Shown here: in pieces, positions 56,101 to 63,617 of the stretch
Layout of the letters: the number at the start of each line of letters is the position of its first letter
How positions within the stretch are numbered: position 1 is the stretch's first letter
NCBI RefSeq assembly: GCF_009834535.1
Contig: NC_045711.1
Coordinates: 35,774,001-35,838,000, forward strand
DNA: 64,000 bases
Source: Camelus ferus
Taxonomy: Eukaryota
Direction: 5' to 3'
The notes under the pieces: model-generated
What the model saw: only the letters and a program-made list of their open reading frames with translations
Database searches by the model: none
What the model was told of the DNA's origin: nothing
Made by a program: the position numbers and the translations under genes

Positions 56101-58199
56101 CATCAGAAGGTCCCCCAGTTGACCTAGTTAATTAAGTAAATGTCTGGCTTCCCTGCCCCACGAGAGGACGTGAAGATCCCAGAGGACATTTAACTTTGAA
56201 TTCCCCAGAGAGCCAGGTGTGGCACTTTGTTCAGGAAATGTTTGTTGAATTAAACTGGAGAACTTCTTGAAAGGAAAGATTGACAGAATTGGAGGGAGCT
56301 GATGGAATCCCCTCTCTGGAGATAGTTCTTTGCATGAGTGAATTCTCACCAAAACCTCTCACAACTCAAATGTTTCTGCCACAGTATTCCCCACAAATAT
56401 CCACAAGCCCTTTGAGGATCAGAGAACTCCACAATTTCTCCCTTCAGTCAGCATTCTGGCAGGCTCGTCCTGTGGAGCCTCACCTCTTTCTGCACATGAT
56501 AAAAATTTGCTGGAAGCAGCAGGGAGGGGCTGGAAGTTAGAAAGGTGGAGACAGGCTAGTAGTCCCATGATGTAGGCAATTGCTCTGACCAAGAGAGTCC
56601 CCCTGCCTGGCGGGCATCCCAGAGGGACTCCCCCACTGCCCTGTGTACCCAGAATAGGATATCAGCTCCATCATGACTCCTTATCACCACGAGCATTCTC
56701 CCTGAGATTCCTCCAAAAGATAGGGCTCTCCACTGGCTGCCCATGTGCTGAGCACATGATGGAACTCTGCCCAACTCAGACACTGTGGCTCCTAGCAGCC
56801 TGGTGGAGACCCAGACAGCAGCGTTTGACTATTTTGTCAGAGGATCAGTCCTATCTGCCCTTGACTCACTCAGACTATAGAAACTCCAGTTTCCAGGGAT
56901 CACCATCATCATTACTCAACACTTTCTACGAAGACTTATCTGGATAGAGGGAAGGGGTCATCTCTTCTGCAGGGCCAATACCAGGCAATACCAAACACCC
57001 TCCCTCCCAACACTGTAAGTACACATGTCATTTGCAGCCCACCGACGGCCACCACTACCACCACCACCACCACCATTTTCCTGGCTCTCCAGACTAGGGG
57101 TGGCAGAATAGGGTTGCTTGGACCAGCGGAACAGTGTGCTGAAGGGCAGCTGGATTCTGCTTGAGAAGGGTAGGAGCTCAGGGGGGTGGGGAGGAGACTC
57201 CAGATCCTACCTCCTGGATGAGGTTTTAATCATTTCCAGCATGGAATGTGGTCAACCTTTGCTACTGACTCATTTGCTCTGAGTTTCTTTTCCCTGTCCC
57301 CAAACTACCCCTTACAAAGCAATAATGATTTACTCATGGGGAACTCAAGTGGGTTTTAAAAAGTTTTATTCCCACTGGCTCTTATCCTTGAAAATGCATC
57401 AGTTCATCACCTGAGTCAACCCCTGCCCCCCTCCCAGTCCTAGGTCACCTGAGTGTGAGGTTTGTGTCTCTGTGCAGCTGCAGGATGGTTTCTGCTCATG
57501 GAGGTGAGCAGGCATCATTGTTTCCCATAACTTGGTGTTTGTTATTTTATTCCTTGTCTACATCCATGGCTATCATAACACTGTATTGACTTCCTCGTCC
57601 TTATATGTATATTTCCATGTCTATGTATCTCTGTTCTTTCTAGCTCTCTCTCTCTCTATCAATCTTTCTAAGTACAAATGAAAGAAAGCTCAAAATACAG
57701 AAGCCCTTTCCAGAGTCCCCAGTTCCCAGTTTGCTGGTGTTTTTATTTAGAACCATATATTCATCATACTGTTTTTTATGAACATTTATTCACTCTGTTG
57801 CTTAAACTTATGTTAAAACCCAAAGGTGCTAACTTTAAGGACATTAAATGAATTAATCAGTGCATTCAAAGATGATTATTTTCTGACCCTAAGAGATATG
57901 GATCCAGTACTAGGAAAAGGGCTTGATCTCCCAGATCAGAGGCATTTCCTAGACCCTAATGCAGTTCAGAAAGGCTCAGCAAGATGACAGTTTCCAGTAC
58001 AATAGAACTTAACTATATTTTAAAATCCATAATTTACAAGTTGAATAGCTAGAGCACCAAGACTTTTCTTTGTCCTCAAATAAGTGCAGTTGCAGACATG
58101 GGAAATCAGGCATCTTTGCAAGAACCATGGCAGATTTAGACTCTGCCTTGTGTCTCTGGCTGGGTTTCAGAGCCAGGAGGGCAGTCCCTTGCCCTGTCA

Positions 58200-58440
58200 A
58201 GCAGTAATGCCAAAGTTAATAATTGGCCGTGCCAGCCCATGGCTGATCAGGCTGTTCTCGTGTGCCTGTTTTCTATTTTACGTAAATCATGCTGAACATG
58301 TTTGCATCAACCTCCTGGTGATGCACCTTTGATCAATAGATTTTAGACAAAAGTGGTTTTTGAGTCCAAAGATCAGGGCTGGGTTGACCTGCAGACTGGA
58401 TACAGGGTGTATAAAACAGAGGCAAGGCGCAGGCTGATAG
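58200..58440 (+). promoter_or_regulatory. G6PC1: G6PC1 proximal promoter: HNF1 58215-58227, IRS/GRE region 58244-58280, CRE1 TTACGTAA 58278-58285, FoxA TGTTTGC 58299-58305, CRE2 TTGCATCA 58302-58309, HNF6 ATCAATA 58332-58338, HNF4 DR1 58363-58375, TATA 58410-58416, TSS about 58437
   Basis: Motifs read directly, in the order described for the human and mouse G6Pase promoter. Confidence 0.85.
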
Positions 58441-58506
58441 CAGAGCAGTCACCACCAAGTCTGAAAAAACTGCCAAGGCACAGCTGAAGGCTTCCTGAAG
58501 GGCTAG

Positions 58507-63617
<5,111 letters not shown>

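Follow-up and report, generated by a model that had tools for sequence, protein, structure and literature searches.

G6PC1 catalyses the last step of hepatic and renal glucose release, and its IRS1-IRS2 unit is a textbook insulin target acting via FOXO1. IRS1 is reportedly a high-affinity and IRS2 a low-affinity site for FOXO1, both being needed for full repression by insulin, and a GRE is said to overlap IRS1. The closest known system to the camel sequence considered here is the insulin response unit of human and mouse G6PC1 (region B, with IRS1-IRS3 as FOXO1/FKHR sites; O'Brien laboratory), which belongs to the same gene, occupies the same position between the HNF1 site and the CRE, and carries the three T-rich motifs in the same order, with IRS3 and the flanking elements identical to the letter. 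The camel unit differs from it in that (i) IRS1 reads TGTTCTC in place of TGTTTTT, by which the forkhead core is broken, (ii) the IRS2 run is one T short, so that IRS2 abuts IRS3, and (iii) the proximal promoter is devoid of the 7-mer T(G/A)TTT(T/G)(G/T). The TGTTTTT form of IRS1, which the original prediction had given for human and mouse, agrees with the printed human IRE probe (-189/-157, GCTGTTTTTGTGTGCCTGTTTTTCTATTTTAC; PMC6274985) and with two mouse ChIP primers that include GCTGTTTTTGTGTGCC (PMC8563733, PMC4403943).

The glucocorticoid response unit of G6PC1 is a further point of comparison. In mouse this unit contains three GREs together with accessory sites for HNF1, HNF4, FOXA/FOXO and CREB, HNF1 being an accessory factor and element of both the insulin and the glucocorticoid response units and CREB being listed among the accessory factors (PMC12795704), and the GR ChIP amplicon used in mouse hepatocytes spans -215/-111 (PMC8555985). 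Seen against this unit (Vander Kooi 2005, as summarised in PMC12795704), a camel 15-mer at 58244-58258 lies inside the GR-bound -215/-111 region and has the layout of inverted hexamers with a 3-bp spacer; on the right, camel shows a perfect TGTTCT half-site where the other sequences have TGTTTT. The composite units of PCK1 and IGFBP1 share with this arrangement the architecture of an insulin-inhibited forkhead site that is accessory to nearby GR sites (PMC517930, PMC12795704). In those two genes the forkhead and GR sites stand side by side, whereas in camel G6PC1 a single base converts the sequence of a forkhead site into that of a GR half-site.

The G6PC1 locus and its core promoter

The window, i.e., the whole stretch of 64,000 nucleotides of Camelus ferus DNA that was analysed and to which all positions refer, contains a gene starting at 58516 that was identified as G6PC1 from its exon 1 ORF and from the match of exons 2-4 to bovine G6PC1, the alignment of the bovine gene to the window giving four matched exons. 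The coding part of exon 1 (58516..58746, + strand; ATG at 58516) comprises 77 codons and its peptide ends in ...LVFKW. The reading frame meets a TGA codon right at the splice donor (AAG TGG followed by TGA; 58516-58749), and exon 1 is therefore called as a 77-aa 'gene' or free-standing protein on many host-derived metagenome and Logan contigs. This exon-1 'protein' is a handy handle for mammalian promoters, and it also populates big sequence collections with spurious 'proteins'. Promoters for comparison were drawn from public contigs carrying the exon-1 ORF and from annotated genomes, and were labelled by the match of the exon-1 peptide to named proteins. The comparison set consisted of the 12 non-camel sequences in a 14-sequence alignment.

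The core promoter of camel G6PC1 extends from the HNF1 site (GTTAATAATTGGC; 58215..58227, + strand), whose core GTTAAT does not vary among the 14 aligned sequences, to the TATA box (TATAAAA; 58410..58416, + strand), which was read from the sequence and is conserved in the alignment. Between them lie, all on the + strand, IRS1 (58253..58259; derived TGTTCTC, ancestral TGTTTTT, with the forkhead core broken at 58257), IRS2 (58267..58273; TGTTTTC, with an intact T(G/A)TTTT core), IRS3 (58274..58280; TATTTTA), which directly abuts IRS2, and the CRE (TTACGTAA; 58278..58285), which is invariant in the alignment. The transcription start site presumably lies near 58437, a position that we take from homology with the 5' end of the human mRNA. 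Counted from the G6PC1 start site, the region 58244-58280 is some 180 bp upstream (within about 160-200 bp); it falls in the interval from the HNF1 site to the CRE and is taken to be the camel form of the proximal unit through which G6PC1 responds to insulin and glucocorticoids.

Two features of this promoter were recorded in addition. Its most conserved part is found at about 58292-58393, where the sequence is nearly identical from camel to murid, and the core promoter at 58215-58417 has been unusually conservative in the camel lineage, with three events per 203 bp versus an average of about nine crude events in each of the other sequences (n = 12). Farther upstream of G6PC1 the window holds three tandem copper amine oxidase genes of four coding exons each (19300-44150). 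The most diverged copy occupies about 19.3-24.2 kb; AOC3 follows at about 25.2-30.8 kb, and the third gene, AOC4 ('liver isozyme'), takes up 37.8-44.1 kb. The AOC4 ORF is 99% identical to the Camelus ferus 'liver isozyme' and 97% identical to the alpaca protein, which marks the animal as a Camelus and bears out the camelid supposed in the original prediction. An alpaca locus (L034, AOC4 with a 10-kb flank; CM108735.1 of assembly GCA_048564905.1, low-coordinate end at 47,134,364) aligns collinearly with window 27.9-54.0 kb (about 97% identity) and stops some 4 kb before the promoter, which would be expected 4.1-4.3 kb past that end, near 47.130 Mb.

The camel allele and its fixation in Camelus

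The original prediction had described a promoter in which IRS1 has lost its run of T, has become a perfect half-site for the glucocorticoid receptor, and is followed by a shortened IRS2. The letters at 58244-58280 bear this out, reading TGATCA, GGC, TGTTCTC, GTGTGCC, TGTTTTC and TATTTTA in succession. The TGTTCTC at 58253-58259 is derived, the T-run of IRS1 having been lost, and the hexamer so created, TGTTCT, is a perfect half-site. The camel IRS2 has 4 T (58269-58272) where each of the 12 comparison sequences has a T in an extra column (12/12), so that IRS2 is indeed one base shorter and abuts IRS3.

Over the 203-bp block 58215-58417, which takes in everything from the HNF1 site to the TATA box, exactly three events are restricted to the camel lineage, namely the substitutions 58257 T>C and 58259 T>C and the loss of one T from the IRS2 run, and all of them fall within 58253-58275. 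The remaining differences between camel and the majority in this block are states common to pig or other clades. The substitution at 58257 (+ strand) puts the C into TGTTCT and, on the opposite strand, disrupts the AAA core of the forkhead consensus RYAAAYA; the alignment has T at this column in 11 of the 12 other sequences and C only in the perissodactyl L017. At 58259 (+ strand) the change is A>G at the R position, which leaves the forkhead consensus satisfied and makes a CpG; here again 11 of the 12 others have T, and C occurs only in the rhinoceros (L019). IRS2 retains TGTTTT in camel but lies 1 bp nearer to IRS3 and the CRE.

Fixation was assessed with five Logan contigs and with sequence-word matches in 14 runs. 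The five independent contigs (L009-L013, from five runs) carry the camel exon-1 peptide and have the same promoter letters; one of them, L009, represents a divergent haplotype (99.67% identity, 7/2118 bases differing) and yet has the same allele. All sampled words of 57900-58800 were contained in 14 DNA runs with three organism labels from several studies. The identical letters in these contigs and runs imply that the allele is real and that, within this sample, it has become fixed in Camelus. Since one of the three events alters the length of a homopolymer, a common error type, an assembly or sequencing artefact, or a variant private to the reference animal, might be considered. The agreement of five contigs from five runs, including the haplotype that differs at 7/2118 bases, and of 14 DNA runs under three labels effectively refutes this explanation, to which we assign a negligible probability. 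The camel allele is a genuine, derived and fixed cis-regulatory variant of a well-known element, and its sequence, its polarity and its fixation in Camelus are what the data show.

The look-up of the camel exon-1 peptide returned Camelus contigs only. No camelid G6PC1 was found in the peptide-cluster listings, and no alpaca run occurred among the DNA runs with camel sequence words. Two candidate peptides for alpaca or llama were rejected, one of them belonging to a perissodactyl. Scans of metagenomes with two promoter patterns gave 0 matches each.

Forkhead and glucocorticoid receptor sites

Forkhead proteins recognise RYAAAYA (PMC8034652). The opposite strand of IRS1 reads AAAAACA in the ancestral state versus GAGAACA in camel, where the AAA core is lost; it is the change at 58257 only that violates RYAAAYA, since 58259 T>C leaves an R at position 1. 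Forkhead proteins also tolerate variant sites such as AHAACA (PMC8501956), and residual binding to AGAACA may therefore occur, although the camel IRS1 misfits this secondary motif as well by having a G where the motif calls for H. The core T(G/A)TTTT is present in IRS2 (TGTTTT) and IRS3 (TATTTT), whereas the camel IRS1 (TGTTCT) fails it. With the stricter 7-mer T(G/A)TTT(T/G)(G/T) no compensating site was found in camel within 700 bp upstream of the ATG; the same 700-bp region holds two such sites in pig, two in cattle and two in the rhinoceros, one of the latter in the IRS unit. The camel change probably weakens the binding of FOXO1 and other forkhead proteins at IRS1, and if the affinity reported for IRS1 is right, the camel would have lost its best FOXO1 site.

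The GRE-like inverted repeat at 58244..58258 (+ strand; TGATCAggcTGTTCT) has two inverted hexamers separated by a 3-bp spacer, as in the elements of class I steroid receptors. Its right half is perfect and its left half agrees with the consensus at 4/6 positions, a T standing at a conserved-A position. The substitution 58257 T>C yields TGATCAnnnTGTTCT, which matches the GRE consensus at 10/12 positions. The 10/12 match of 58244-58258 to AGAACAnnnTGTTCT had been put forward in the original prediction and was confirmed as a count, but such matches are no rarer than chance in the window: 7 with at most two mismatches to AGAACAnnnTGTTCT were found versus 4.2 ± 2.1 expected, and 13/100 shuffles reached 7. 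With a frequency at chance level, the GRE-like match carries weight only through its location. TCAGGC (58247-58252) is invariant in the other taxa, and the new TGTTCT half-site stands 3 bp from TGATCA. The change at 58257 may raise the affinity of GR for this candidate half-site.

A different sequence has been used under the name 'G6Pase GRE' as a gel-shift probe (mouse ...CTGTCAAGCAGTGTGCCCAAGTTAAT...; PMC3310817). It maps just upstream of the HNF1 site, at window 58189-58214, and where its right half has GTGTGC, camel reads GTAATG and other non-murids GCAATG or GC-ATG; the probe element looks specific to murids. The probe was rejected as the GRE overlapping IRS1, being a different, upstream element that is not conserved in camel.

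The explanation that we prefer, and consider rather probable, is that the three events on the camel lineage hit the tandem forkhead sites, leaving much weaker FOXO1 binding at IRS1 and maybe a stronger GR half-site, and that they amount to modest turnover. On the lineage to Camelus, 58257 T>C, 58259 T>C and the T loss in IRS2 would have struck the tandem forkhead sites, the first of them stripping from IRS1 the TTT/AAA core that is read by FOXO1 and FOXA. FOXO1 binding at IRS1, the high-affinity site of the mouse promoter, would be much weaker, and insulin/FOXO control would be left to the intact core of IRS2, the low-affinity site. The same change at 58257, through the perfect TGTTCT 3 bp from TGATCA, may lift the affinity for the glucocorticoid receptor. 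These effects on binding are predictions from the sequence, and the net effect on transcription is probably that of a modest site turnover in a redundant unit rather than of a proven physiological switch.

IRS1 turnover in mammals and the glycaemia of camels

IRS1 reads TGTTTTT in pig (L005-L008), Bos taurus (L014), beluga (L018), red fox (L030), a murid (L031) and the mammal L001, as well as in the Bos-like and other ruminant contigs L020-L029 with the exception of L027. In agreement with the original prediction, the same TGTTCTC was found in none of the normoglycaemic ungulates compared (pig, cattle, other ruminants, rhinoceros); the camel allele is also absent from beluga, fox, murid and human. 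The IRS1 change is, as judged from these alignments, camel-specific among the animals compared. Changes of other kinds do occur at the site. The black rhinoceros (L019) has TGTTTTC. In L017 (311-388; Logan contig SRR12437607_1239813) IRS1 is CGTTCCT, with IRS2, IRS3 and the CRE intact; this sequence is 91% identical to Diceros over 1.1 kb and is for that reason taken to be from a non-rhinoceros perissodactyl, probably an equid. CGTTCCT is predicted to be more harmful to the forkhead site than the camel form TGTTCTC. L027 (Logan contig SRR12529179_265840) comes from a ruminant sharing about 96% identity with Bos; it has TGCTTTT, in which the core is broken at position 3, and CGATCA in place of TGATCA. 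In L015 the forkhead match is improved by TGTTTGT (reverse complement ACAAACA), and the IRS2-IRS3 junction is likewise shortened.

The variants of L017, L027, rhinoceros and L015 resemble that of the camel in being lineage-specific at the same 7 bp while IRS3 and the CRE are fixed, both of the latter showing no variation across the compared taxa. None of these variants gives TGTTCT, so none gains a GR half-site. The changes inferred in other taxa number 6 in the 7 columns of IRS1 versus 0 in IRS3, and of the three sites IRS1 is the most changeable. The independent losses of the IRS1 core in L017 and L027 mean that such a loss is not peculiar to a hyperglycaemic lineage and that the site is dispensable in some normal mammals.

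These observations bear on the possibility that the camel events represent neutral turnover with no measurable regulatory effect, an explanation that we rate as plausible but distinctly less probable than the one preferred above. According to it, IRS1 is weakly constrained and redundant, with IRS2, IRS3, HNF1, the CRE and distal sites doing the regulation; the adjacent T>C pair would be one multinucleotide event or the outcome of GC-biased fixation, and the T loss would be homopolymer slippage. The independent core losses in L017 and L027, the further variants in rhinoceros and L015, the 6 events in 7 columns of IRS1 and the shortened IRS2-IRS3 junction of L015 are all in line with it, as is the fact that both substitutions are weak-to-strong and 2 bp apart. 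It accounts less readily for the position of the camel events, all three of which lie in the IRS1-IRS2 span of a strongly constrained 203-bp block, given that this span is only averagely variable in other taxa (13.5% of events in 11.6% of columns). The crude event count for the other 12 sequences was 111 over 207 columns, with 15 in the 24 IRS1-IRS2 columns, from which the chance of finding all three camel events in IRS1-IRS2 has a crude P of 0.0025. This value rises to about 0.02-0.16, weakening the clustering, because the span was chosen post hoc and because the two T>C changes, 2 bp apart, are possibly one event. The clustering was accordingly rejected as proof of selection, since it fails to convince once the post hoc choice is corrected for and the T>C pair is treated as probably non-independent. 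A fully neutral history also sits uneasily with mutagenesis of the mouse promoter, in which IRS1 and IRS2 were reportedly both required for the insulin response to be complete. Relaxed constraint on a redundant IRS1 would fit the pattern at least as well as adaptation.

To our knowledge, the glucose trait of camels has so far been discussed only through fast-evolving coding genes, and our literature search found no paper on the camel G6PC1 promoter. Camels have a blood glucose of 6-8 mmol/l, roughly twice that of ruminants, and are insulin resistant (PMC3514880). One could suppose that in stem camels or stem Camelus a single base turned a high-affinity FOXO1 site into a GR half-site, by which an insulin-repressible G6PC1 would have become driven by stress hormones and would contribute to high, insulin-insensitive glucose. 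Such an adaptive rewiring, which is the reading of the original prediction, would accord with the camel's 6-8 mmol/l glucose and insulin resistance (PMC3514880), with a derived allele that has reached fixation in Camelus and is lacking in pig, cattle and the other artiodactyls compared, with the fact that every camel-lineage change in the core promoter strikes the forkhead sites, and with the gain of a perfect GR half-site. We nevertheless consider it improbable. The camelid promoters compared are all of Camelus, whereas alpaca and llama share the physiology, a perissodactyl and a ruminant have similar or worse damage to IRS1, and the evidence for selection is weak after correction. Moreover, FOXO1 is an activator and an accessory factor of the glucocorticoid response (PMC12795704), so its loss could lower G6PC1 output rather than raise it, and the sequence does not allow the direction of the net effect to be predicted. 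Parallel losses of IRS1 in other ungulates further weaken the glycaemia hypothesis, which is a reasonable one, but the link between the IRS1 change and camelid glycaemia is speculation.

With modest turnover of the tandem forkhead sites as the preferred reading, the fixed and derived loss of the IRS1 forkhead core is a concrete and cheaply testable cis-regulatory candidate. The camel allele can be seen as a natural experiment on how much IRS1 matters. Of equal importance, the loss of the IRS1 core in other ungulates suggests that not every mammal needs the high-affinity site as defined in rodents.
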